64,000 nt of DNA from Lytechinus pictus (lineage: Eukaryota), in contig NC_087258.1 of NCBI RefSeq assembly GCF_037042905.1, positions 23,064,001 to 23,128,000 of the forward strand. The letters are read 5' to 3'. Positions 10,642-55,700 of this stretch are shown piece after piece. How positions within the stretch are numbered: position 1 is the stretch's first letter; each line of letters opens with the position of its first letter. The notes beneath the pieces are model-generated. The model searched no databases, was not told where the DNA came from, and worked only from the letters and a program-made list of their open reading frames with translations. The position numbers were made by a program, and so were the translations under genes.

Positions 10642-10880
10642 CACTGTAAAAACTGTGGTGTTAAAACTGACACCAGTTGGTGTTAATAGAGGACCACACC
10701 CCGAGGTGTTAAAATTACACCCTAGAGATTAAAAATAACACCAAAGCGTGTAAATGTAACAACCAAAGGTGTTGTAATGACACCTATAGGTGTAAAACTA
10801 ACACCACCAATTCAACACCGGTGTAAAATAACTGGTGTGGTCCTCTATGTACACCGGTTAACACCGCAGTTTTTGCTGTG
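10642..10880. mobile_element. CACTG-terminus MITE
   Basis: CACTGTAAAAACTGTGGTGTTAA ... TTAACACCGCAGTTTTTGCTGTG with AA 2-bp TSD. Confidence 0.7.
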
Positions 10881-11880
10881 AAGGAATTCCGGCAAGCAGT
10901 TCTAAGTATTATGTCAGGCCATCACATCCCACACACCACAAAAACCGTCAATATTTTTCTTTTCATAAGTACTTTTCTAAAATGAAGGCCAGATTCTACT
11001 CAAAAAGGCTCTCAGTAAACAGAATGGAACGTATTATATGGAGGAGTTCAACCAAATCGAATGCATACATGTTTATTGTATAAATTTCCATCGTCCTTTT
11101 GCTGTATTTCCTTTAAAATGCAATGCAGTCCGTTGATATGTGAAAAAGATGCTCGAATCTAGCAGAGAGTGTGACATTTGGCATACTGTGATATTTCGGG
11201 GCACTGATTTCAATAATTAATACAAAAATAATGGTGGTCGATTTGAATTCATGCCATTCATTCCTACTGGAACGGATTCTATGTGCAAAACGTATATTAC
11301 AAGTCAATATAACAATTCATGTGCGAAAGATGGAATTTTAATACATGTGTAGCAATTCTACGCTGTAAAACACTGTTTAAGCACGTTATTTAAGCCCGCC
11401 ACTCTAACAGCAACTGTTTAAACTATTTAAACTGTTCAAACCTTTTAAACAAGTTGTTTAACAGTTTTAAACAATTACAAACAAGTTTAAACAACTTGTT
11501 GTTAGAGTGACAGGCTTAAACAACGTGCTATTTTTTTTAATGTGTATAAATTGAGTTGTCTAAGACAATGGCGTTTACAGGTATTTTCGCTATATAAGAA
11601 TGTACCCTTTTTAGAGAATATTATGCATTTAACAGAGTGTTATACAATGCAAACCCTCGGCCGTACGCAGATTTTTTCCCCAGGGAGACGCCAAAAATTT
11701 AAGAAGCTCGAAAGTGAAGGAGCGAAGCGGTCGAGCCTGTCATGGTGGCACTTTTGCCTATTCTTACTAAAGTGAAATTAAAGGATTGACTCTTTACACC
11801 GTCAATTTGGTGGAGTTGTTATTCTTCGTAAATTATTTAACAAAGCTTACATGGCAAAAACAACAATAACAGAGTGTAGA

Positions 11881-13233
11881 TTTGTTAACAAGTTATGATT
11901 TCCTCCTATAAAAGCCTCTTAATTTACTATCTATTGTCCACGGCGGACGGCATTTGAATATTAATGAGTCAGAAAGAAGAGGATCGAGGGTATTTGAATT
12001 CCAGTTCATCGTGGCTTAGCTGTGAACCAGAATAGCCTGGTGGTTGAGTCGCTGCCCGGAAAGCAGTAGATGGCAGGTTCGAATCCCACTGGTTCCAATT
12101 TTTTCTGACTTATGATCTTATGATTTTCATTACAGATCGAGCATACTGATCTTATGATTTTCATTACGGATCGAGCATACTGATCTTAAACAAATAGGAG
12201 TGGTGCCGAAAAATTTGTTAACAAGTTATGATTTCCTCCTATAAAAAGCCTCTTAATTTACTATCTATTGTCCACGGCGGACGGCATTTGAATATCAATG
12301 AGTCAGAAAGAAGAGGATCGAGGGTATTTGAATTCCAGTTCATCGTAGCTTAGCCGTGAACCAGAATAGCCTGGTGGTTGAGTCGCTGCCCGGAAAGCAG
12401 TAGATGGCAGGTTCGAATCCCACTGGTTCCAATTTTTTCTGACTTATGATCTTATGATTTTCATTACAGATCGAGCATACTGATCTTATGATTTTCATTA
12501 CGGATCGAGCATACTGATCTTAAACAAATAGGAGTGGTGCCGAAATTTTTTTTAACAAGTTATGATTTCCTCCTATAAAAGCCTCTTAATTTACTATCTA
12601 TTGTCCACGGCGGACGGCATTTGAATATTAATGCGTCAGAAAGAAGAGGATCGAGGGTATTTGAATTCCAGTTCATCGTGGCTTAGCCGTGAACCAGAAT
12701 AGCCTGGTGGTTGAGTCGCTGCCCGGAAAGCAGTAGATGGCAGGTTCGAATCCCACTGGTTCCAATTTTTTCTGACTTATGATCTTATGATTTTCATTAC
12801 AGATCGAGCATACTGATCTTATGATTTTCATTACGGATCGAGCACACTGATCTTAAACAAATAGGAGTGGTGCCGAAAAATTTGTTAACAAGTTATGATT
12901 TCCTCCTATAAAAGCCTCTTAATTTACTATCTATTGTCCACGGCGGACGGCATTTGAATATTAATGCGTCAGAAAGAAGAGGATCGAGGGTATTTGAATT
13001 CCAGTTCATCGTGGCTTAGCCGTGAACCAGAATAGCCTGGTGGTTGAGTCCCTGCCCGAAAAGCAGTAGATGGCAGGTTCGAATCCCACTGGTTCCAATT
13101 TTTTCTGACTTATGATCTTATGATTTCCATTACAGATCGAGCATACTGATCTTATGATTTTCATTACGGATCGAGCATACTGATCTTAAACAAATAGGAG
13201 TGGTGCCGAAAAAAATTTGTTAACAAGTTAACA
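11881..13233 (+). repeat. Tandem array of 4 x ~333-bp units, each with a tRNA-like Pol III cassette, flanked by an 11-bp TSD
   Basis: Units start at ~11881, 12214, 12548 and 12881, with a stub at 13216; near-identical. AGAGTGTAGAT is present at 11871-11881 and 13234-13244. Each unit has a ~34-bp internal duplication TGATCTTATGATTTTCATTACRGATCGAGCATAC. Confidence 0.95.
12024..12104 (+). ncRNA. tRNA-like cassette of array unit 1 (repeated in all four units)
   Basis: A-box TAGCCTGGTGG (12033-12043); B-box GGTTCGAATCC (12076-12086); anticodon-like arm GCTGC-CCGGAAA-GCAGT; closing helix GAACCAG/CTGGTTC, followed by CA and T6 (12099-12104). The D/T arms are non-canonical, so this is not a bona fide tRNA. 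Confidence 0.6.
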
Positions 13234-13271
13234 AGAGTGTAGATGTACTCTGGACCACAAATATCACAAAA

Positions 13272-13514
13272 CACTGCAAAAATTCCGGTGTTGATTTAAC
13301 ACCAGCCCGGAATATATATATGTCCACACCAGAGAAGTGTTAAACAACACCGGTTTTGGTATTAGTCTAACACCAGATAGGTGTTTATACAACACCAATT
13401 AGTTTTAAAACAGCATCGGTTTGATTCCAAAATGGTGTTGTTTCAATACTTCTCTGGTGTGGACATATATAGATTCCGGGCTGGTGTTAAATCAACACCG
13501 GAGTTTTTGCAGTG
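13272..13514. mobile_element. CACTG-terminus MITE
   Basis: CACTGCAAAAATTCCGGTGTTGATTTAACACCAGCCCGGAAT ... ATTCCGGGCTGGTGTTAAATCAACACCGGAGTTTTTGCAGTG; near-perfect long TIR. Confidence 0.85.
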
Positions 13515-28769: not shown

Positions 28770-29725
28770 GGTTACACTTCGTAATTCCGAAGGTTCGTAA
28801 TTCCGAAACACGTAAATTGCCTATACCTCGATGTTCGTTAATCCAAAAACGAAAAAGGGTTCGTAAATCCGAACATTTGTGGTGTTATTCCGAAGGTTCG
28901 TTGTTCCGAAGGTTCGATAATCTGAAAACGAAATAAGGTTCGTTGTTCCGAAGGTTCGTTAATCCGAAAACGAAATAAGGTTCGTTGTTCCTAAGGTTCG
29001 TTAATCCGAAAACGAAATAAGGTTCGTTGTTCCAAAGGTTCGCTAATCCGAAAACGAAATAAGATTCGTTATTCCGAAGGTTCGTTAATCCGAAAAATGA
29101 AAACCGGGAAAGCAGAGGAAGGTGGTGGGGGGAACACCGTTGCTGTACAATTGGTATGAGGATGGGAAGGCAAGGGCGGACAAACGAATTTTCGTTTGGG
29201 GGGGGGGGCAAAGCCAAAAATGACACTCATACGTCAAAATGGGCACTTTGGTGATATTTTCACCATGAGACCCGGGCCATGAAATTATCATCTGCGTGAA
29301 GTCATTGTGTATTTTATAGTAATTAAGTAGAGAAAAGCCTTTTTGAAGTGACTTCTGAATATGGAAAGATGTAAATTTAGGCTTTATTTTTCGCGAGAGT
29401 GTATAATGAGCAAGCGGTTTGGAAAAAAAATCAAAGCTGAAGTTGTAAAACTCGTTTTGGGGGTCAATTACTGTTAAAATGGCATTATTGCGAGGTGTTG
29501 CGAGCGTGAATCACAATCTCAAACTTTAGGGCATTTCAATAAGAAAAAAAAAAAAAATTCCGAGCAGGTTTCTGCTATCATTAAAAAGATGTGCATCTAA
29601 CCATGGACCCAATAGAGTCCATGATCTAAATAAATTAACACGAGCGCAAAGCGCGAGCTTAAATATACTGACCAGAAAAGGAACCTGTTATGGAATAACG
29701 AAGCTTGGGAATTACGAATGTATGC
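28770..29725 (-). mobile_element. Internally deleted foldback element, inverted copy of 30393-37159
   Basis: 28770-29690 is the reverse complement of ~36205-37159 and is joined directly to a ~35-bp left terminus (TGGAATAACGAAGCTTGGGAATTACGAATGTATGC). Confidence 0.85.
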
Positions 29726-31305
29726 GAAATTCACTACCCCTTATATATTACCGTACAAAAAAACCCACCACGCATTAGTCTACAAAATAATATTAAAAAT
29801 CGTGATTATCGGTGGCATTAGTAAAACTCACATACACACAGGAGCTTTGTAACGTTACACACCCGAGTCGAAGCCGAAGGCGTTTTGAAGAAATCAAAAT
29901 GTGGGTAATTATTCTAATGCCAGAGCAAAATGATGCGTATTAAAAGTGTTATATAGTAATGCAATATAGATCCTTGTTATTTTGTTTAATCATCTTCATC
30001 CCAGAACAGTGACTGTTCATTATACTTTACTAATGACCATTCATCATCGGTCAATAGTAATCTACGCGTTATGCCAAATAAATGACAGGTCACGTGCTTG
30101 CACACAACCAATCATAATTATTAGGATCAAAATAATTCATCTCAAACAAATCTGGCCAATACCTTTCAAACATGATCATTGTAGCATTCAATTGTGCTTT
30201 TGTTCTCTTAACATATTGGCTAGTTTGCCACAAAGATTTATCGAACATCATATGGAGATTAAAACGGAGTGAAAGTGCAACCTTGATGTCAGAGAGTCAG
30301 AAGAGAGAAATCATGTCCTTTAGATTTTATATCGTGCGTTTGTGATATCATGATAATTCTAATACACATTTTGACGACGGCTGCACAATGTCGCATACAT
30401 CCGTAATTCCGAAGCTTCGTTATTCCGAAGGTTCGTATTTCCAAAGGTTCGTAATTCCGAAGGTTCGTTAGTCCGAAAACGAAATGAGGTTCGTAATTCC
30501 GAAGGTTCGTTAGTCCGTAAACGAAATGAGGTTCGTAATTCCGAAGGTTCGTTAGTCCGAAAACAAAATGAGGTTCGTAATTTCGAAGCTTCGTTAGTCC
30601 GAAAACGAAATAAGGTTCGTAATTCCGAAGCTTCGTTAGTCCGAAAACGAAATAAGGTTCGTTAATCCGAAAATTAAATAAGGTTCGTATTTCCGAAAAT
30701 GAAATTAATTCATTTTGGCAACGAGAACGGTGTTTTCCTTACAAGATAACAGAATATTATGCAATAATAGTGATAACGAACGATGATACATGTGTGTTGT
30801 GGCCAAAGCATGTATTTCATTAAGAATAGGCGCCCGGATCAAGCATAGGCTTAATTTCGATTTTATCTGAGCAATTGCTGCATAAGCAAATGGTTTAAGG
30901 ATGCAGGGGATTAAGAGTGTTGGTCGCGTGCGAGTAACCTACAGATAATAGGTTTTGTATTGGAGGGGGTGTCATTTTAATGAGCTTTGCTGGTAATAAA
31001 AATAAAAATAATACTAATGATGATCATAATAAAAATGGTAATAAAGAATATAAATGTTAATAAAATTTTATTGATCGTAACGCCTAGTGTTAACAATGTT
31101 AATCCTTTTTTTTCTTTGTTTTACACTTTTTTTTATTCTAGGTCTCTTTCAGCTTGATTTAATTAACTTTGTGTATTCTTATTATCATTCTCTTTTAGGT
31201 CCAGTTCAAATCTACTCGACTTTTCTCCTTCTTTATATTTTGATTTGTTATGAATATCAATTTTCTTTGTTTTACACTTTTTTTATTCTAGGTCTCTTTT
31301 CTACC

Positions 31306-33953
31306 ATGACTTACCATCTATCTTTATTTCACCAGCTCAGGAAGATCAAGCTGAAGGCCCTCAATACCTCTTTTCACCAGGACAATTACAGATTTTATTC
31401 CCTCAATCGCATTATACCCACGGGGCCTCCAACTTCATTGCACTCCTGGTCTCGGTACGCTCACACCTGAACTTCGCAAACGATGGAACCAGACCTTACA
31501 TGGAGCTTCAGTTCGACTAATTAACATCCTCTCTGAACAGTGTATTGCTTCTCTTGATTCTTTTTCAGCTGACATCAGTAGCCTGGAAGACGAACTACGT
31601 TCTTGCTGTACCCAAACCCAATGGCTTCAGTATAATGATGAAATTGAATCTGATCTCTCTAAACACAGGTCTCTCCTCACTGAACGCAGGAACATAGGCA
31701 ACCTCACAAAGAAGCGACAACGGTCAAACAGATTTAGACGACATACCAACAACAATGATGCATCCCCCCATTTGGTTGTTAATCTCTCATCCTCCCCTCT
31801 CTCCCAAGCAGAAACCTCTCTTCTCTCTAAAGGTCTCAAGTTTTGCCCCACGCCACCAGAAGTTGAACAGATAGCTCTCAGCCAAGACCTCTCTACATTC
31901 TATCGCAGGATACGTCTCAAAGAGTTCTTTTTAGATGCACCCCCTTCTGATCCCGAGCCCTTCTACAAGAAAAGCACATGGATTTCACCCAAGAATAGAG
32001 TTCCTTCCCTTGAAACTTACATCCAAGCTGTCTCATCCCAAGTTCGCTCCACAGATACCCTCGACACCAGAGCACATGACAACCTTCCTCGAGAAGAACG
32101 CCAGGCTCTCTCATCACTCAAAAACAGGTCCGACATCATCATCAAGCCTGCAGACAAAGGATCAGCCGTCGTTGTTATGGACCGCCAGCAGTACATCGAT
32201 GAAGCCATGAAACATCTCAATAATCGATCTCACTATGCACTCCTCGATTCTGACCCTACTTGTAATTTCTCCCTACAGATCCAATTAACACTGAATGACA
32301 TGAAAGAACACCAGCATCTCTCCGGGAAGGCCCACAAATTTATCTCCCCTACTAATGCTAAACCTGCCCGCTTCTATCTCCTCCCGAAGATCCACAAACC
32401 TGGCAACCCCGGTCGACCCATCCTCTCAGGAAATGGTTCCTCAACAGAGAACATCTCCCTTTTTGTTGATTACCACATTAAGCCCCTTGTCTCACGTGCA
32501 CCCTCTTACATCCACGACACTCCAGACTTTCTCAGGAAACTAAATGACATCAAGGACCAGATACCCGAGACTGCGATCATCGGCACTTTCGATGTTTCTT
32601 CACTGTACACCAGCATTCCCCACGACGAAGGTATCCAATCATCATGTGAAGCCTTAGCCGCCAGTGGCCATTCCAGTCCCCCCATATCCGATATCAAATC
32701 TCTGATGTCTCATGTACTAACAAAAAACAACTTCACATTCATGGGCAAGCACTACCTACAGATATTTGGTACAGCAATGGGCGCCCGGATGGCTCCTTCA
32801 TTCGCCTGTCTCTTCATGACCAAGCTGGAACAGAAGATGTTAGATTCAGCCCCCTGTCGCCCATGGATTTGGTGGCGTTACATAGATGACATTTTCTTCA
32901 TCTGGACCAGAGATGAAGATACATTCATTGACCACATCAATTCCTTCCACAGGACCATCAAATTCACTTCTGATTTCTCCCAACAGGAAACCCACTTCCT
33001 TGATGTCACAGTCCAGAAAAAGTATAACGGTATCACCACTACCCTATACTCTAAACCCACAGATACCCACCAGTACCTCCACTCATCCAGCTGCCACCCC
33101 CGTCACTGCAAAACCGGCATCGCTTACAGTCAAGACCTCAGACTTCGCCGTATCTGCTCCGAGGACCCTGATTTTTCCTTCCATGCCAGGAATTTGCAGA
33201 AACATCTCTGTGCCAGGGGCCACGGGGCTAGGGCAGTCCAACTGGCAATTAACAAAGTTCGTTCTCTCCCCAGATCTGAAGTTCTCAAACCAAAAAGTGA
33301 CAAGGAGACTACCGGCAGAATACCGCTTGTGACCACCTTCCATCCCAATCTACCCCCTCTCCGCAAAATTCCTGTGTGATAACCACCACATTTTACACAC
33401 TTCTGATCGTCTCCAACAGGCCGTTCCCGATACTCCCCTTCTAGCATACCGACGCCCACCGAATCTCAGGGACCTCATTGTTCGTGCTGAAGTGCCCTCC
33501 CTCACTAACAATTCTTCTCCCATACAGCATGGCACCTTCAAATGCACCAGCAACATGTGCATCATACGTGAAATACACTTTCACGAGGGCGACACTCTCA
33601 CCAGCAACTCTACCAGCCTGTCTCACCAAATCAAGGGCAACATAACTACCACTAATGTTGTATATCTCATCACTTGCAGAGTTTGTAGGGTACAATACAT
33701 AGGGGAAACCAAGACCACACTCAAGAGACGATTCTACGGGCACAGATCCACCGTCAACACAGCAAAGCTGGACACTCCAGTTGGCCGCCATTTTAACCTC
33801 CCCAACCACTCCATCACTGACATGATGCTACAGGGCATCGAATCTTTAGGTACCCGTCCTGACTCAGTCCGTACGAGCAGAGAGAAGCTCTGGATGAGAC
33901 GACTTCGCACCACCCAACCTCATGGCCTGAACATCCAAGAGGGGAACGACTGA
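31306..33953 (+). pseudogene. Penelope-like retroelement ORF: reverse transcriptase + C-terminal GIY-YIG endonuclease, two frameshifts
   Basis: ACCATG at 31306; frameshift at ~31418 into IPRGL...; PLE motifs LSKGLKFCP, IIKPADKG, YLLPKIHK, GRPILS, FDVSSLYT, GTAMG, WRYIDD, FLD; frameshift at ~33372; then VVYLITCxxCxxQYIGET..LKRRFYGH..REKLW..PHGLN (GIY-YIG). Confidence 0.95.
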
Positions 33954-34858
33954 TTATTCTTTCCTATCCACTTTCAATTTATATATACATATCATTTTTC
34001 CCCTCAGCTCTTTTGAATTATAGTTTCTTCCTCTACTTTCCTCCCATATCTCATACAAGCTCAGCTCCAATTTTTCCTTCCTTATTCAGGCGATATAATA
34101 ATTATTATATATATATATATTTTCTTTCTTTCTCCACTCACCTCTTTTAGATTTACCACATTTGCTTATTTACATGTATACTATGGTTTCTTCATAATAC
34201 ACCCCCTCTCTTCTATATTTGCTTTTACCTTTTTAGGCAATTTGCTTCCTCTTTTTCACATATACAGTTTTTTTTTTTTTTTTTTTTTTTTCCTACTGTA
34301 TAGTCCTATGTTTTTTTCCCGTCACACCTAGCGGATTACAATATCAGTTACACCATATGTGTATTTATATTTTTTCATATACATTTCTTTTTTGGATATA
34401 TTTATATACAAATCACTTATAGATACATATTTACACTTACCTTCTTCTCTTAGTTTGTTTAATGCTTTATCATATATACTTATATGTCTTTTGCACATTA
34501 TCAGTTGTTCCCCATTCTTTTCCTTTTTCCCCCACTCTTATGCACCAGTTTATTATGCCTTTCTTTGTAACCTGTTTGACCCACCTCTCACTAATTCTCT
34601 AGTTATTCATCCCTCTATCACTGTTTTGTTCCAGATCCTGTTTGATGTTGCCTGCCTCATTATCTTAATCCCTCTTGGCCTTACTTACACTAACTTCCCT
34701 TTGTGTCTGCCTACTCCTTTTCTTTCATCCCCTTCACTATTAAACCTGATTGGTCTTCTCTACTCACTAATACCCCTTTTGTCTCCTTGTTTCTAGTGTT
34801 GATGTAGCTTGTTTGTGGTCTATATTATGGTTGTTCCACTTTATATGTTTGTCATTTT

Positions 34859-34897
34859 GCCTCCGACGAAGATTCTGCTAGGATCGAAAGCTTAGGC
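34859..34897 (+). ncRNA. Minimal type I hammerhead ribozyme motif (core variant CCGA)
   Basis: Stem I GCCT/AGGC; core CCGACGA-A; stem II GATTCT-GCT-AGGATC; GAAA; palindromic stem III AGCT; cleavage triplet CUU. Located at the PLE 3' end, where such motifs are known to occur. Confidence 0.8.
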
Positions 34898-34963
34898 CCC
34901 TTTTTGACTTTCTAATTTCCTTTTTAAATGATTCAAAAAATGCTCGTAATGTTTACTTTTTAT

Positions 34964-35287
34964 GTGGGGCGTTGTTGCCCAGTGGATTAGTCTTCTGACT
35001 ATGAAACAGAGGGTCGTAGGTTCGAATCCCAGCCATGGCGTAATTTCCTTCAGCAAGAAATGTATCCACACTGTGCTGCACTCAACCCAGGTGAGGTGAA
35101 TGGGTACCCGGTAGGAAGAAATTTATTAAATGCCTTCATTTGGGCGCCTAGGCAGCCCAGCTAAAGCCGGGGTAATGATAATAGCAGGGCCCGCTGGGAG
35201 AACAGTTTTCGGAACTGAAGTGGCTTCCCTTGGTAAATAATACCAATATTATTATTATCATTATCATTATTATTATAATTATTATTA
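34964..35287 (+). mobile_element. tRNA-derived SINE
   Basis: GTTGCCCAGTGG (A box) ... GGTTCGAATCC (B box); core shared with 25187-25460; (ATT)n tail. Confidence 0.85.
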
Positions 35288-37280
35288 GGCCTACATGAAA
35301 TTTCCAAAAGTTTGAGCTCGTGATTCGCTCGCAACATCCCACAAGGATGTCCTTTTAACAGTAATTAGGTCCATAATTGACCAAAAAGCGAGTTTTACAA
35401 CTTCAGATTTGAAATAATTTTTCGAAACCGCTTGCTCGCTACGCTTGCTCGCGAAAAATAAAACCTAAATATATATCTTATCAATCAGAAATCAAGTAAA
35501 AAAACCTTTGCTCAACTTAATTACTACAAACCACACAAATTCTTTACACAGATGATAATCTGATGGTGAAAATATCCGTTTGCACCAAAATGGCCGTTTT
35601 GGCATATAAAGTGCAACTTTTTTGTTTTTGCCCCCCAAAGGAAAATACGTTCCGCCGCCCCTGGTTGAAACATGCATCGTCTTCATGGCTAACTGCAAAA
35701 ATTATTTAACATGTCCCTTTTAGTTCAGGTCAGAGCTTATATTTAAAATTTCTGCTCGCGCTTCTTGCTCGCAGTTGTCATCTAGTTACATAGGCATCTT
35801 GTTTTGAAGATCACAAACATATTGCCCATCATATTCATAAAAAACATTATAGCTCGCGCTTCGCGCTCGCATTATTTAAAAATGGCTTATGATATTATTA
35901 CATATTTAGTTTATTTTATAAGAATAAAGCTAATTATTGGTCGTTAGGACTACCCTTTCAAAGAAACAAACAAACAAATATCAACTTTGAGCTGCCGATC
36001 GGGGAAATTATGGGTGAACAAACAGGGAAATGTTATTTTTCCAAAATGGGAAATTCTCTTTTTTCAAAATAAATACTCTTTTTAAAGTACACATTTTAGA
36101 TTAATTTTCAGGCTGGAATATTACAATTTGTCAGCTCGCGCTTCGCACTCGCATTATTCGATTGGTGAAATATGTATCATAAAGAGGTCACTAAATGCAG
36201 TCCTTAACAAGTTCTTTTTCTGGTCAGTATATTTTAGCTCGCGCTTTGCGCTCGTGTTAATTCTTTAGTTAGATCATGGACCCTATATGGTCCATGGTTA
36301 GATGCACATCTTTTTAATGATAGCAGAAACCTGCTCGGAATTTTTTATTTTCATTTGTTATTGAAATGCCCTAAAGTTTGAGCTTGTGTTTCACGCTCAC
36401 AACACCTCGCAATAATGCCATTTTAACAGTAATTGACCCCCAAAACGAGTTTTACAACTTCAGCTTTGAAATTCTTCCAAACCATTCGCTCATTATACTG
36501 TCTCGCGAAAAATAAAGCCTAAATATACGTCTTTCCATAATCAGAAGTCACTTCAAAAAGGCTTTTATCTACACAATGACTTCACGCAGATGATAATCTC
36601 ATGGTGAAAATATCACCAAAGTGCCCATTTTGACTTACGAATGTCATTTTTGGCTTGCCCCCCCCAAACGAAAATTCGTTCGGCCGCCCTTGCCTTCCCA
36701 TCCTCATAACAATTGCTCCCCCCCCCCACCACCACACTTGCCCTTCCTCTGCTTTCCCGGTTTTCATTTTTCGGATTAACGAACCTTCGGAATAAAGAAC
36801 CTTATTTCGTTTTCGGATAAACGAACCTTCGGAATAACGAATCTTATTTCGTTTTCGGATTAACGAACCTTCGGAATAACGAATCTTATTTCGCTGTCGG
36901 ATTAACGAACCTTCGGAACAACGAACCTTATTCCGTTTTCGGATTAACGAACCTTCAGAACAACGAACCTTATTTCGTTTTCGGATTAACAAACCTTCGG
37001 AACAACGAACCTTATTTTGTTTTCGGATTAACGAAGATTCGGAACAACGAACCTTATTTTGTTTTCGGATTAACGAACCTTCGGAACAACGAACCTTATT
37101 TCGTTTTCGGATTATCGAACCTTTGGAATAACGAACCTTCGGAAGTACGAAGTGTAACCGTGAATTTCATGTTATTTTTGTTTAATTAACTTGCATGCTT
37201 CTATTATCTTAAAAAGGTAAACAGTTGACATGTTTTACGTGAAACTCTAATAATCAGAATATTTCCATTTATTATTATGT

Positions 37281-49763: not shown

Positions 49764-52700
49764 TTTTTGCAGGAATTTCTGCATTTTATTCATAAATCAA
49801 CAAATGAAAATAGAATGATACAATAACAATGACATAAATGAGTACATTTTTGTGTGACAATCGAAAATATAAATAATGAATAAGGCTGAAAAATACATAA
49901 ATGAAGCACGTAAAATAGTAAAGTGGGTAAAAATGCAGGGGCCAGCTATAATAAGCAGGTAACTGCTTGAAACAATAGCAGCCATGAGGGAGGGCTACAT
50001 GGGAACCGTAATAATAGGTTATGAATAGAATTCGATAAAATGATGTCACAAAAGAGAAAGTATAAAAGTTTAGATTTTTAATGGGGAGAAACAAGATAAA
50101 GTTTTTTTTTAAAGTGCGAGTGAGTGCTAGTGGGTGGGTGCAGGTGATACATTTATGAATACTTAGAAATAAGAAACTTTTTCAATGAAGCTTTAAAAGA
50201 AAAAAGAGACGCGGACTGTTTGATGTTATGTGGCAAGGCATTCCAAATATCTGGACCATGATGGCGAATTGTTTTATAAGTGAGTAAGATTCTGGGGTTG
50301 GTTAAGTGGATATCTGTTGAATGACGCGTTGGATAAGTATGTATGTCTTTGTTATAGATAACAAAATTGCGAAATGGAATTGGAATGGTATTTGTGGAAA
50401 ATTTAAACATAAATATGGCTATTTGGTATGTGTTAATATCCTCAATTTTCAATGTCTTTAAGTTGTGAAATATTGGATTAGTGTGTGCAATGTAATGTGA
50501 AAGTGTACAGATGCGAAGTGCCTTTTTTTGAAGACGGAATATAGTTTCTATTCTTGACTTACTACTATACCCCCAAACAATGTTGCAGTAAGATAAGTGG
50601 GATAAGATGAATGAATTGTAAAGCATAAATAATGACTTTTTTGAGATATAATATTTCAATCTATATAAGATTCCTATCCCTCTGGATGTCAACATACAAA
50701 TATTGCGAATGTGACTGTTCCAAGTCAAATTTGAATCAATCAAAACACCTAAAAATGTGGTTTCTTGTTTTTCCGTGATGGGAATATCATCTATAAAAAT
50801 GTTGTTGAGAAACTTGTGTTTACTTTGAATGTGTTGAAAATACATAAAATTTGTTTTGTTTATATTTAAAGAGAGCTTATTAGCTCTAAACCACATTGAT
50901 AATTTCTTCAATTCTAAATTAAGTGTTGGAACAAGTATATTTAAGTCTTTGTGTGAATAGAATACATTTGTATCATCTGCAAATAAAACAAACGTCAATA
51001 TTCTAGATGCATTCACAATGTCATTCATATAAATCAAAAATAACAAGGGACCCAAAATAGATCCTTGTGGTACTCCACATTTTAAAGTACAAATATTAGA
51101 TGATTTAGATTAAAAACAAACATAATGGCGTCGATTGCTTAAGTAATCTTTAAACCAAGCGAGAACCACCCCCTAACTCCATATTTCATTAATTTACAAA
51201 GTAAAATGCGATGATCCATGATATCGAATGCTTTCGACAAATCCATAAAAACACAAACAGTGTGTTCCTTTTTAGATAAAGAATCAGAAATTTTGTCACA
51301 TAATTGCAAAAGTGCAAGGTCCGTTGAATGATTATCTCTGAAACCATATTGATTAGGAATCAGTAAATTATTGCTGTTCAAAAAAGAATATAAACGCTTG
51401 TAAACTATTCTCTCAAGTATTTTAGAGATACCCGGTAATAAAGAAATTGGACGATAGTTTGAGATAAGACATGGATCATCTTTTTTGTATATTGGAATTA
51501 TTTTTGCAATTTTCAGTAGATCGGGGAAAATACCACAAGAAAGAGAACGATTGAAAATATGCGAAAGCGGGGAGGCTATAAAATAAATTATTTTTTTCAA
51601 AAGATAGACACTTATACCATCATGCCCACAGGATTTAGTCGGTTTCATGGACCTAACAATTTCTAAAATCTCGTTAGTATTTGTTGGATTGAAAAATAAA
51701 GAATGTTCTGGGACATCGTTTAAATATACAGAAAAGTCATCATCATTAGATGTTATTTTTGAAGCTAGTTTTGGGCCAATATTATTGAAGAAATTATTAA
51801 ATGCATTAGCAACATCAAAGGAGTCTTGCATTTGTTGACCATTGTCTACGAAATTAACGTTATCACATGTTTCCTTTTTCTTACCTAAAATTTCTTTTAT
51901 AGATTTCCATAATGTATAATTATTATCTTTATTATTTTCAATTTTATCAGAAAAGTAGGATTTTCGAGCTTGGCGTATAACTGATGTTAATTTATTGCGG
52001 TATTTTTTGTATTCATTTATATTTTCAGTTGTAGGCGATTTAATTGATATTTTATATAATCTATTTCTAGTAAATATGGATTTGATTATAGTTTGGGTAA
52101 TCCAAGGTTGTTTGCTCTTCTTTTTATTCGATTTAATTTTTATTAATGGCATATTTTTTTCGTAATAATAAAGAAGTTTGTCCAAAAATCTTTCATAAGA
52201 GTCATTAACATTATGTTCAAGATAAATATCTTGCCAAGATTCTTCAGCCAAATCTGCCTTCAATGACTCAATATTACGATGGGTTTCTTTCCTTCGCATT
52301 ATAGTGTATGATTTGTCAGTAGCCTTGAGTTGGCGTTTATCGTTTGGATACATTGCAAAAATAGGCAGATGGTCTGAAATGTCATAGTAAATTATTCCAT
52401 TATTGTTATTATCAAGTGCGTTAGAAAAAATATTATCAAGTATTGTATTGGATACGTTTGTAATTCTAGTAGGTTTATTTATAAGATGTTGAAGTCCAAA
52501 AGATGATAATAGATTTGTAAAATGTTGAGCGATTGCATTGTATGGAAATGATAGATCAATGTTAAAGTCACCCATGATATAAATATCTTTGTTTTCACGC
52601 GAAATTGAATCAAGACTGGCTTCCAATTCATTTAAAAATGTTTCAGCTAAACTGATTGGGGGTCTATAAATAACACCAATTATTTTATTTTTATTTTTAG

Positions 52701-55700
52701 CATTAGTAATTTCTATGAATAAGGATTCTATATTTTTCAGCTCAATATCATGTCTTAATTTGAAATTCAAATCATTATGAATATAGAAAGCGACACCGCC
52801 CCCCTTACCAATTTTACGATCAATGTGGAGAAATTTGTAGTTATCGATATTGAGAATGGGAGGTGACGTTGAATGCAACCAAGTCTCTGTGAGACCAATG
52901 ATAGAAAATGGAAATGTATCAAGAATGGATAAAAGTTCGCAAAGCGTATCAAATTTTTTCTGTAAGCTTCTTATATTTACGTGCATTAAACTAAAGTAAT
53001 CTGGAATAGAATTTGGAACTGTTTTGTTGAAAGCATTATTGAATTCGTTAGCTGTATAATATTTATTTTGGGGTGAAAAGATTTCAGCATTCAGTAAATC
53101 TGTTGAGTCAAACATGAAAGAACAATGTATGGCATATGGCGAGTTAAAGAAGTAAGCGAAATAGTGCTCGGTGTGTGCAAGTGCAAGAGGTGTAGGCTAA
53201 AAGCAGTGAATAAAGAGTCCGTATACATGTTCACCTTTGCGTGACGATCTGACAGACTCGGGGCCGGTGCATAAATTAATCATTGTCATAAAAAAAGGTT
53301 TTAAAAGTCTATGAATCTATTGATATAGTTTTAATTTCCTAATTTTCGTGTAAAACTATGAGGTTGAAATGATAACTAAAAATATCTTTGAATTGATAGA
53401 AAACAGTAATTAGATTAGAAATATACTTTTCTATCGTTTCATGACATCATTATACCTTGAATAACAGAAGATATATCATGGAGAAAAGGTAGTGTTTAAG
53501 CAAAATATACACACATATATTTATATGCATATTACAGCTTACTGGAGCCTCGGAAGAACATTTTGGGAGGCAAAATAGATATATAAGGAATTATGTGGAA
53601 GAAATTTATAGACGCCGATGGAACTAATACTAGTACATAAACAAACCCATACAATAGATGCACATGATGTAATCAGATTCATGCTGACGAATAAGGGAAT
53701 ATAATAATCCTGTGCATTCGTAAACTGGCGTCAAACAGCATTTTGGAATGGAAAAAAAAATCCTGCCCTCTTAGAAAAAAAAGAAGAAAAAAGATGTCAT
53801 TGACAAATGAATGTGGTTGGAATGTAAAGCAATAGATGATAGAGAATGTCAAGAGCAATATAAGTTAACATTGATGTACAAAAAGTAGGGGCGAATGAAC
53901 GGTAAAACAAGGTTTCTATTAAGCATAGTAGTGTATAGGTACGAGCATTAAAGATCCTCATTTGCATAGGAATTCGACATATTCACGTGCTGTAAATTGT
54001 AACCTATTCATAAAAAACAGAACCTATGATAATGTCATCTGAGTGCAATTAAGATTTTTTTGCAATACATCTGACAATAAACAATGCCAAAATGGTTTGA
54101 TTTCAAATGGGAAGAAATAAAGAGAAAAATGCATAGCAAGCAGAGGTGAGGAAACGTATCGGAGACGCAATTATATGAGATCCCTGTCATGCAGGAATTT
54201 ATGTTAAAATAGGGCAAATAGAAATGGACCCTGTACCAAATGAGGAATTTTGACTCTGAAAAGGGCAAGTCGCTTTTGAAATGTAACAGCTGAATAATCT
54301 CATTCGCATTGGTATAATGTAGAAATGCGCATGTAAACCAATGATGATAGAAATGTTTTCCTTTTACATAATAACAGCAGGGGAACAACGTATATAACAA
54401 GGTCTCCTTCGTGTTGGAATTCATGAGACATGTAAGATGGATCACATTTGCATAGGAATCCGACACATTCACGTGCTGTAATTGTAGCCTATTCATCAAA
54501 AACTGAATATGTATTATAATGAGGTCGAAAAAAAAAAGGTATTAAGAATTTTGCAGTGCACTTGAACAACCAAAACATTACAAATGGTTTGATTTGGAAT
54601 ATAAGGAGATAAAAAGCAAAATGCATAGACGTGTTTTGTATCGAAGATACAATAATGAGATCCCTATTACACTGGGTTTTCTATTTACCAAATGAGATCC
54701 AACATTAGCTCTGAAAATGGCAAGGTGAAGTTAAAAATACAATCGTATTTATAAACTCATTTGCATTGACCATAATATTTATAGCGATATTTTTATAGGA
54801 ATGTGTTTGTAAGGCAACCTGTTCTAGAAAAAAGAAAAAAAAAATCGTAGAAAATACAGTTTTAACTTCATAAAACTTCGGAGGAGAGTATGGAAAAGAT
54901 TTCGGTTAATAACAAACAAACAGACAACGGAATTATAAAGGCATCGTGTACAAGATCAGGTCATATGCAATATTATCACGTTGAGCTTCATTTTAATGAA
55001 TTACTTCATTTGCATATGAGAAAATTAATGCAAGACTTACGTAAACTCAGCATTATTTTTTGGAAAAATAAAGAAAATCACGCAGTGTATGTATGTATAT
55101 GCGAGAAGTTACTTTTTCGCAGAATATAAAAAACTGGATGTGTCAAGTGACAATAAAATTTGCTCAATTTCTTTATTCAAGAAAATAAGATATAAGATAT
55201 CCAAACATGTTCACATGGTATACGTTGACAATAACCACAGGCAAAATAATGCCTAGATTTAGAAATTCAAACTTTTTTTGTGTAATCAAAATATAAAGAG
55301 TGTAGTGTTTGCATGTTTGGTCATTTTATTTTCGAGATACATTTTTTTTTTAATATTCGAAGACAGTGAATTGAACTCATTCTTATATGTTTTTTTTTTT
55401 TTTTTCGAAAAAGAAAATCTCAAACATGCCAACACGCAACATCGCCGATCACAATATGGTTTTATTAATGGATCTATTGCAGGAGAAAATTTAACCCTTC
55501 CGCAAATACATACATGTATTATCGAAATTGGAATCATGCACTGAATAAGCTTTCTTATCCCTTAAGCAGAAAATAATTTAGTATTTGTATGACAGCGATG
55601 ATTACTTTCTGTCTTTCCAAAAGAGAATAGAAAAATCTATCCATGCTCAAACAGCATATAAAAAAAACCGTTGACAAGGTTATCACTAAAACAACAGCAG

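Follow-up and report, generated by a model that had tools for sequence, protein, structure and literature searches.

The tandem array at 11880-13230 of the window (the whole 64,000-nucleotide stretch of Lytechinus pictus DNA that was analysed) is one copy of a dispersed mobile element, and it is probably the insertion of a non-autonomous, hammerhead-less retroelement for whose copying a Penelope-like element (PLE) supplies the reverse transcriptase/GIY-YIG endonuclease. As the insertion pattern of the family is the one published for PLEs, we read the family as related to animal retrozymes but free of a hammerhead and equipped with a tRNA-like cassette. Below, A and B denote the two unit positions at which copies recurrently end.

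Units and boundaries of the array

The features of the array, all on the plus strand, are as follows.

11871-11881 (+): left copy of the target-site duplication (TSD), AGAGTGTAGAT, with a possible extension to AAC at 11868-11870
11882-12214 (+): unit 1, 333 bp, with its 5' end inside the palindrome (unit phase 332/1)
12024-12104 (+): unit 1's tRNA-like cassette, comprising acceptor stem, A box, B box and T6 at 12099-12104
12113-12188 (+): 34-bp internal subrepeat of unit 1, 2.2 copies; it recurs in every unit, and many of the 5' truncation points of the family fall here
12213-12262 (+): unit junction with both recurrent family 3' ends; B is the palindrome AAATTTGTTAACAAG, A is ..CTCTTAATTTACTAT, and the ~36 bp between them form the 'tail'
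12215-12548 (+): unit 2, 334 bp (TRF and unit alignment)
12358-12429, 12691-12762 and 13024-13095 (+): cassettes of the other units, repeating that of unit 1
12549-12881 (+): unit 3, 333 bp (TRF and unit alignment)
12882-13216 (+): unit 4, 335 bp (TRF and unit alignment)
13217-13230 (+): terminal stub, unit positions 1-14; a B-type 3' end in the palindrome TTTGTTAACAA, without the 36-bp tail
13234-13244 (+): right TSD copy, AGAGTGTAGAT; 13230-13233 (AACA) may belong to an extended duplication with one indel

The original prediction described near-identical tandem units between direct repeats of AGAGTGTAGAT, and both were confirmed, with units of 333, 334, 333 and 335 nt and a stub of 14 nt. 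TRF reported one array here (period 333, 4.0 copies, 97% matches, score 2591), and mean column identity in the four-unit alignment is 98%. The unit is 333 bp long with 40% GC. Three variants shared by subsets of units and 10 singletons indicate that the array has evolved in place, and the variant already pointed out as common to units 3 and 4 is a C at alignment column 91.

The array starts at 11882 with TTGTTAACAAG. At the right end the unit reaches position 13/14 (..AACAAGTT/A) and is followed by AAC[A]AGAGTGTAGAT, which pairs with AAC-AGAGTGTAGAT in the left flank; the right end of the window array is thus the usual palindrome end plus the TSD, and, if one indel is allowed, the TSD of this copy may measure 14 bp. 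The 'TTAACAAG doublet', previously taken for the short-repeat tail of target-primed reverse transcription, resolves into that palindrome end and the duplication. We infer that the window copy is a single-arm insertion, starting at B, running through four units and ending in the palindrome. The shared start and stop phase that had been remarked on holds for this copy and for loci L031 and L034, the only ones whose 5' end lies in the palindrome when the BLAST query is rotated; it fails as a family rule, most 5' ends being truncated at other places in the unit. A preference of 5' ends for unit position 1 was rejected with the same rotated query, as these ends are mostly artefacts of the query boundary in BLAST.

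A dispersed family with two recurrent ends

Genome-wide, the family comprises at least 369 units (41-mer, up to 2 mismatches; 0 in controls) on many contigs and at well over 40 loci, in keeping with the proposed dispersal with independent TSDs. There were 525 candidate loci, of which 40 were scored and 21 sequenced with their flanks; these 21 are the best BLAST hits, so the sample is biased to young copies. Each array is its own insertion block in all 21, and TSDs of 7-15 bp (mean 11) surround the whole insert in 15. Flanking repeats of at least 8 nt occur at 15/21 family loci as against 4/420 mismatched flank pairs (1%), so the direct repeat around the window array is more than chance, and the suggestion that the array entered as one mobile multimeric block is supported. 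An all-against-all BLAST of 2.8-kb flanks found none shared between the 21 loci. The array was also considered as the core of a larger element; this was rejected, since such matches as the flanks have are to unrelated dispersed repeats, at distances that do not correspond.

As a rule in this family, an array has 2-13 units and complete flanking duplications, and the units within it are identical or almost identical, with 0 differences across the 4 units of L031 and 2 singletons across the 12 units of L039. Loci at 99% identity lie at C8:35.006 Mb, C7:39.33 Mb and C10:34.997 Mb. Where two unit types (lettered A and B independently of the ends) occur together, they alternate as ABABA in L040 and follow the irregular order BABBAAB in L049.

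Among 31 arms, 0-13 units long, 29 terminate at one of two unit positions ~36 bp apart: B ends (15 arms) fall at phase 10-20, in the palindrome TTTGTTAACAAA, and A ends (14 arms) at phase 46-56. There are 23 further matches in which GCCTCTTAATTTAC lacks the usual unit sequence after it, most of them additional A-type ends at 46-51, although at least two (TTTACTAAGCAT...) resemble a deletion-variant subfamily rather than A ends. The 5' ends are truncated, with phases spread over the unit and 20/31 at positions 230-333. Eight of the 21 loci hold clean two-armed insertions, in which an inverted arm stands head to head with the other arm within one duplication; the inverted arm faces outward with a fixed 3' end that is always of the other type, so that all eight pair one A end with one B end. 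In L033 and L043 multi-unit arms flank the inversion junction, all inside one duplication, and in L034 the arms join in the palindrome. Small or irregular inverted pieces occur in L031, which additionally carries a 12-nt B mini-arm, and in L045, L046 and L049. The coordinates of the family search matches suggest more two-armed insertions. The inferred nicks fall immediately 5' of GTT, on one strand or the other, in 7/30 cases as against ~0.5 expected; B-type junctions show some microhomology, and there is no poly(A) or microsatellite tail. A hairpin at the site-B junction (ATAGGAG...CTCCTAT) was predicted, yet it is no more stable than shuffled sequence.

This pattern is familiar from PLEs, whose insertions are truncated at the 5' end and partly tandem, with a neighbouring copy that is inverted and itself 5'-truncated, and with a tail of 30-40 bp that is often confined to one end (PMC8557442; PMC3846280). 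Their reverse transcription is initiated within the RNA, at two neighbouring sites that bracket the tail; each of the two target strands is cut and extended, and insertion in vitro does not need hammerhead cleavage (PMC11167929). Non-autonomous PLEs give rise to multicopy insertions arranged head-to-tail, and hammerheads are missing from Naiad and most Chlamys PLEs (PMC8557442). The in vitro work, in which the start site is the same for both strands (PMC11167929), leaves the strict A/B pairing of arms unexplained. Of the two enzyme sources previously put forward, a LINE or a Penelope reverse transcriptase, the insertion signature favours the second.

In such a scheme, the PLE protein would bind a long transcript covering several units, and its endonuclease would nick the two strands of the target ~11 bp from each other, in many cases immediately 5' of GTT. 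Reverse transcription would start internally, at B (the palindrome) or at A (36 nt downstream), and would not use the RNA 3' end as its start; extension from one or both nicked strands, together with template jumping, would yield head-to-tail multimers and head-to-head arms. The genome contains 468 GIY-YIG candidates, 59 of them above the Pfam cut-off, often as head-to-head pairs and with open frames of up to 1026 aa, and the window itself holds one PLE (an ORF pair with RVT_1 and GIY-YIG). The unit shows no similarity to that PLE or to six further PLE loci drawn from the 468 candidates, a comparison of genome coordinates placed no monomer locus near a GIY-YIG hit, and no other part of the window matches the monomer.

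The cassette, the transcript and alternative routes

The tRNA-like cassette predicted for the middle of the unit is there, at unit positions ~143-223, with a perfect B box (GGTTCGAATCC) and T6 as described; its A box carries one mismatch. In unit 1 the tRNA-like stretch covers 12024-12095, with a perfect 7-bp acceptor stem and an anticodon stem, and T6 begins two bases past the acceptor stem. A genuine tRNA gene was rejected: the cassette scores 18.6 bits against the Rfam tRNA models, below the 47-bit gathering score, its D and T stems are degenerate, and ARAGORN called no tRNA. The cassette resembles a tRNA gene or SINE head that has been captured in unprocessed form. A Pol III transcript stopping at T6 would omit sites A and B, which points to the cassette as a putative passenger or local Pol III unit rather than the source of the transposition template. 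Cutting of monomers by RNase P/Z, one of the routes originally put forward, finds no counterpart in the 31 arms: none ends at the borders of the tRNA-like stretch (~143, ~214) or at T6, the ends lying at 10-20 and 46-56, and a single arm, the inverted one of L032, has its 5' end near the tRNA head (phase 135).

Canonical PLEs with a C-terminal endonuclease usually carry a hammerhead, and its absence here counts against the PLE reading. The family resembles metazoan retrozymes in unit size and tandem form, as had been noted, and in low GC. It could be a true retrozyme, in which a unit-length RNA is set free either through a self-cleaving motif not yet recognised or through a host nuclease, circularised and reverse-transcribed by rolling circle, possibly with a PLE's enzyme; we regard this as unlikely. 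Rolling-circle copying of one circle predicts the identity of units within arrays, the duplications exceed 4 bp as in metazoan retrozymes, and the ABABA order of L040 fits a dimeric template, but the BABBAAB mix of L049 is impossible from one circle. The reported absence of a hammerhead was borne out by a pattern scan for CUGANGA on both strands with one mismatch allowed, whose sole one-mismatch matches are CTTATGA in the 34-bp subrepeat, without the essential G5, and by a search of Rfam ribozyme families, none of which, hammerhead included, matched at E<=10. The unit folds with z of -1.8 (plus) and -0.8 (minus), within ~2 sd of shuffles, and is predicted to be neither rod-like nor strongly self-paired. 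Three raw paired RNA-seq runs gave 700-1000 reads per run in both orientations, indicating modest transcription, and none had clustered read starts or ends, although small non-polyadenylated circles may escape such libraries. These results lend no support to the unrecognised ribozyme or circular RNA first envisaged; given what the libraries may miss, they only weaken the retrozyme reading, and as the reads neither cover the 5' flank nor define any ends, the RNA-seq does not discriminate between readings. That PLE insertion in vitro can dispense with hammerhead cleavage also counts against a retrozyme.

The remaining alternatives differ in the enzyme or in the history they propose. A SINE-like or satellite RNA could have been moved by a LINE with an AP- or REL-endonuclease, its inverted arms arising by ordinary twin priming. 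AP-endonuclease LINEs are present, one of them in the window at 50153-53115, and LINE target-primed reverse transcription likewise produces duplications of a variable 7-15 bp, truncated 5' ends and 5' inversion; some microhomology at B-type junctions also speaks for this route. With twin priming, however, the inverted arm has its outer end at internal positions that vary, whereas in these insertions that end is invariably A or B; a choice of two 3' ends separated by 36 bp, each used once in a two-armed insertion, is not a LINE feature, and neither the tailless copies nor elements that do not start at the tRNA head suit a LINE, so we consider this route improbable. For the window locus alone, an inserted monomer or dimer might later have expanded in place by unequal exchange, as the variant common to units 3 and 4 and the other signs of evolution in place would allow. 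This is quite improbable, because multi-unit arrays with complete duplications are the family norm and head-to-tail multicopy insertion is documented for non-autonomous PLEs; expansion cannot account for the multi-unit arms on either side of the inversion junctions in L033 and L043, and their presence within one duplication makes it unnecessary. There is, finally, very little probability that the family belongs to the non-autonomous LTR retrotransposons bearing a Pol III promoter (Cassandra/Helenus/Ajax). Cassettes resembling small-RNA genes, and tandem arrays, have been described from such elements, and the repeats at the two ends of the C(ABC)nA layout are, formally, terminal direct repeats, but their duplications are a fixed 4-6 bp or none as against 7-15 bp here, and the family has variable 5' ends and inverted arms. 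No flanking terminal sequences are common to the arrays, the element ends read TTGTTAAC.. and ..TTTACTA(T) without TG..CA, and a PBS-like TGGTGCCGA occurs in the young subfamily only.

Relation to known elements and significance

On the PLE reading, the nearest relatives would be non-autonomous PLEs, such as the pLTR-only (pseudo-LTR) derivatives, the Chlamys family MRC1 of Chlamydomonas and the sequences captured between pLTRs in Adineta vaga. Like these, the family has dispersed copies, variable TSDs, 5' truncation, head-to-tail multicopies with an adjacent inverted arm, a tail at one end (here ~36 bp long), a palindromic junction or end and no coding capacity; its unit differs in bearing a tRNA-like gene with its own terminator. 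It shares the lack of a hammerhead with Naiad and most Chlamys lineages. With autonomous PLEs (Penelope/Poseidon, Neptune, the anole element PAc) it has in common two start sites with the tail between them, the use of both target strands and tandem or inverted insertions, but it contains no ORF and no hammerhead, the in vitro work on PAc reports no strict A/B pairing, and the inferred nick motif is |GTT rather than the ATT reported for PAc.

Animal retrozymes are themselves pLTR derivatives of PLEs. The metazoan non-LTR retrozymes (newt, Schistosoma SM-alpha and mussel repeats) are tandem monomers of 170-400 bp with low GC, in dispersed arrays with duplications of more than 4 bp; they co-occur with PLEs, which have been proposed to drive their mobilisation (Cervera and de la Pena 2020), and abundant monomer-length circular RNA is a further trait of theirs. 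The family in the window lacks their defining type I hammerhead, and its predicted fold is not strongly self-paired. With tRNA-derived SINEs it shares the A and B boxes of a tRNA-like module, together with mobilisation by retroelement enzymes acting in trans, but here the tRNA-like part sits mid-unit and is followed by T6, the copies are multimers, and there is no LINE-like tail. We found no description of such a family in echinoderms in the literature searched, Repbase aside, and no literature match to strings of the unit sequence.

A further reading, which we think rather doubtful, makes the family a ribozyme-free counterpart of retrozymes, in which the palindromic B site would replace the hammerhead in defining unit-length templates. 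B would then serve both as an endonuclease-like motif (T|GTTAAC|A) and as the start of reverse transcription, acting with a tightly closed tRNA-like domain, and the Pol III cassette would aid expression or RNA stability. If so, the family would stand for a new class of mobile element that depends on PLEs and bears a small-RNA gene, and its intermediates might be circular or self-primed.

PLE transposition is poorly understood, including the tail, the tandem and inverted forms of insertion and the role of the hammerhead. Here a short, young, non-coding family shows all the hallmarks of PLE insertion without a hammerhead, and its start sites, strictly paired as A and B, are legible at single-base resolution. 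It thus offers a compact natural substrate on which internal initiation of reverse transcription, the use of both target strands and the need for ribozyme cleavage can be tested. Searches based on the hammerhead can overlook retrozyme-like arrays of this kind, which should be filed in annotation under PLE-dependent retroelements rather than satellites or SINEs, and PLE machinery can disperse a tRNA-like Pol III cassette.

A dispersed family of 333-bp arrays

The array comprises four head-to-tail units of 333, 334, 333 and 335 bp with a mean column identity of 98% in a MAFFT alignment, and TRF assigns it a period of 333, 4.0 copies and a score of 2591. Each unit carries a tRNA-like stretch, a T6 run and a 34-bp subrepeat in 2.2 copies.

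11871-11881 and 13234-13244: direct repeat AGAGTGTAGAT, bracketing the array
11882-13216: the four units
13217-13230: 14-nt stub of a next unit

The repeat array, AGAGTGTAGAT flanks, tRNA-like stretch and missing hammerhead core described in the original prediction are all confirmed (TRF, MAFFT, Rfam), as is a variant shared by units 3 and 4: this C is one of three subset-shared variants, found alongside ten singletons. The 'TTAACAAG doublet' read as a short-repeat tail instead consists of the unit as far as position 13/14 and then AAC[A]AGAGTGTAGAT, which matches the left flank AAC-AGAGTGTAGAT. The terminus is an end in the unit's palindrome plus a target duplication, possibly longer than 11 bp. 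Directly 3' of the array lies a MITE-like hairpin element (13265-13510), with a second copy ~1 kb upstream (about 10715-10960) that is 84.6% identical in inverted orientation (BLAST) and also aligns, more weakly, in direct orientation. This hairpin family also occurs at L045, a locus of the 333-bp family; its Rfam matches to plant miRNAs (best E 6e-9) are below the gathering score and spurious.

Across most large contigs of the 811-Mb assembly, the monomer matches at well over 40 loci, where 1 to 13 units make up an array, and a 41-mer from the tRNA-like cassette occurs 369 times at ≤2 mismatches versus 0 for a reversed control. Family arrays at G000 C1:28167477-28168572 are spaced at 372/350 bp and at C2:41386466-41386789 at 283 bp, and RNA reads include a variant with one copy of the 34-bp subrepeat missing, so unit length differs among subfamilies.

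We extracted 20 loci with 3-kb flanks, and the end and duplication statistics cover 21 inserts, taken as best BLAST matches and thus biased towards young copies. Loci share no flanks beyond unrelated dispersed repeats, whose distances do not match, and this rules out that the arrays form a larger element's core. Direct repeats of at least 8 nt flank 15 of the 21 inserts, compared with 4 of 420 mismatched flank pairs; the idea of a mobile family had been made to depend beforehand on such dispersed loci with independent duplications. Where both copies can be placed, duplications are 7-15 bp long (mean 11). This variable length is evidence for staggered nicking with target-primed reverse transcription, and against mobilization by a transposase, an integrase or a rolling-circle transposon.

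Fixed ends and paired arms

With a rotated query guarding against BLAST-boundary artefacts, 31 arms can be distinguished at the 21 loci. Fourteen end at A (..CTCTTAATTTACTA/T), at positions 46-56 of the unit (its phase), and 15 at B, inside the palindrome AATTTGTTAACAAATT at phase 10-20, with ~36 bp between A and B; the remaining two, both small or irregular pieces, end at neither. A pattern search added 23 further sites where the A motif lacks its usual continuation, most of them A-type ends breaking at 46-51 and at least 2 resembling a deletion-variant subfamily instead. Arms are cut short at their 5' ends at many different phases, unevenly: 20 of the 31 breakpoints lie in the final third of the unit, immediately 3' of the tRNA-like domain and the 12-bp helix that closes it, a cluster that would fit reverse transcriptase stalling at this domain.

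Eight inserts (L032, L033, L034, L039, L043, L044, L047 and L050) are clean two-armed, head-to-head structures within one duplication, and all eight have one A and one B as outer ends, for which the probability is ~0.004 if end types are independent. At L031 a 12-nt B mini-arm faces an A end, and the arms of L034 join exactly within the palindrome. The window copy is one arm only, starting at B and running through four units to a 5' end within the palindrome.

Of 30 inferred nicks, 7 are immediately 5' of GTT on one or the other strand, against about 0.5 expected, and the element's own B site (TTT/GTTAAC/AAA) is a palindromic double of this motif. This small sample suggests that a single endonuclease specificity serves both strands, and that self-targeting is possible.

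The cassette, its transcripts and the origin of arrays

In every unit the acceptor stem of the tRNA-like stretch is perfect over 7 bp, and there are also an anticodon stem, a perfect B box and an A box close to consensus. T6 begins two bases past the acceptor stem (discriminator-like base, two more bases, T6), and the 3' side resembles that of a tRNA gene before processing, terminator included. A genuine tRNA gene is ruled out (18.6 bits against Rfam; ARAGORN calls none). A hammerhead core is lacking on both strands of the unit, and the ribozyme families of Rfam give no match to it at E≤10. Folding z-scores of -1.8 (plus strand) and -0.8 (minus strand) indicate no unusual stability; a hairpin is predicted around site B, yet it is no more stable than shuffled sequence.

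The proposal that RNase P/Z cutting defines the mobile unit conflicts with the arm ends, which avoid the cassette borders and T6: none of the 31 arms ends there, and a 5' end near the head occurs only in the inverted arm of L032 (phase 135). A Pol III transcript of the cassette would span ~80-90 nt and lack A and B, so it could not serve as transposition template unless termination fails. We take the cassette to be cargo that was captured or else a local Pol III unit, a putative role.

Three raw paired RNA-seq runs with the same species label each place 700-1000 reads on the unit, with equal mate orientations and the greatest depth over the tRNA-like part. Most are 90-95% alike to the unit and hence derive from other family members. 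None crosses the 5' flank of the window copy in any run; the family is transcribed at a modest level, and upstream transcription does not extend into the window copy. Read starts and ends show no clustering on the unit in the three runs, and there is no sign of precise RNA processing in these libraries, which could miss small non-polyadenylated RNAs.

Young arrays are nearly uniform inside (four identical units at L031, three at L038, one singleton in 8 at L032 and two in 12 at L039), and divergence between arrays reaches 5%. The window array is older and may in addition have undergone changes in place. Unit types alternate at L040 (ABABA), and at L049 (G000 C16:6.507-6.510 Mb) seven units of two types, linked at three columns, run BABBAAB. 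The L049 mixture is hard to reconcile with copying of one monomer circle and suggests that templates were switched between RNAs or that gene conversion occurred. As multi-unit arms lie on either side of an inversion junction within one duplication, multimers already exist at insertion. A long tandem transcript could supply them, as could a circular template or repeated template jumps between RNAs, the route that L049 favours.

Penelope-like elements as the probable mover

Insertions of Penelope-like elements (PLEs) are marked by high 5' truncation, partial tandems acting as pseudo-LTRs, an adjacent inverted 5'-truncated copy and a 'tail' of 30-40 bp, often at one end only (Craig et al. 2021, PMC8557442). 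In those of Adineta vaga, one inverted pseudo-LTR has a 31-bp tail, duplications measure 8-9 bp, junctions contain palindromes, and unrelated sequences are mobilized between pseudo-LTRs (PMC3846280). In the only in vitro study of a PLE protein, both target strands were cleaved and extended, reverse transcription began internally at two adjacent sites whose interval is the tail, and cleavage by the hammerhead was not required (Frangieh et al. 2024, PMC11167929). Non-autonomous Chlamys PLEs form multicopy insertions arranged head to tail, and hammerheads are missing from Naiad and most Chlamys lineages (PMC8557442). According to a 2026 preprint, animal retrozymes derive from PLE pseudo-LTRs.

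The 333-bp family is like PLEs in its 5' truncation, tandems, inverted arm, ~36-bp tail and duplications. LINE twin priming also yields an inverted arm, but one whose outer end is variable and internal, with one 3' end type, whereas the family has fixed A and B ends. The family does not qualify as a SINE, and neither does it qualify as a tRNA gene or an LTR-type element. The original prediction of a retrozyme-like RNA without a hammerhead, perhaps copied by a Penelope reverse transcriptase, holds in part: the insertion pattern is of Penelope type and the hammerhead is missing, but without it the family falls short of the definition of a retrozyme. We consider it likely that the family is a non-autonomous element mobilized by a PLE. 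Five of six testable features of PLE insertion are present; the sixth, and the deciding one, would be sequence kinship with an autonomous PLE, and here the unit had no similarity to the six PLE loci compared with it or to the PLE in the window.

A genome search for GIY-YIG domains returned 468 candidate loci, 59 of them above the Pfam cut-off; some have open frames ~1000 aa long, and many form head-to-head pairs. Reverse transcriptase-encoding features in the window include these:

31772-33953, + strand: ORF pair with RT (RVT_1) and GIY-YIG domains
50153-53115, - strand: LINE with AP-endonuclease (Exo_endo_phos) and RT domains over two ORFs

The window PLE is 46-48% identical to other PLE loci in the genome over aligned RT segments. 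Inverted arms of 42-bp tandem repeats bracket its ORF pair (28804-29180, 30397-30731 and 36721-37182; surroundings 28800-37200), and the 'foldback transposon' predicted here may be, or contain, a PLE with inverted pseudo-LTRs. Downstream of the ORF, another tRNA-derived SINE-like sequence (GGGGCGTTGTTGCCCAGTGG...GGTTCGAATCCCAGCC...; 34966-35200, + strand) shares only a B-box 14-mer with the 333-bp unit. Elsewhere, a young PLE family (L052 1830-3270 and L054-L056; G000 C13:5.23 Mb, C1:11.3 Mb, C8:37.40 Mb) has copies 98-99% identical, ~565-bp tandem repeats from about 60 bp past the C-terminal GIY-YIG domain and a perfect head-to-head pair at C8:37.40 Mb. Rfam and a CUGANGA scan found no hammerhead in these 3.3-kb loci.

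The strict A/B pairing of arms is not explained by current PLE models, and the 333-bp family provides a natural substrate that is compact, lacks a hammerhead and has start sites resolved to the base.
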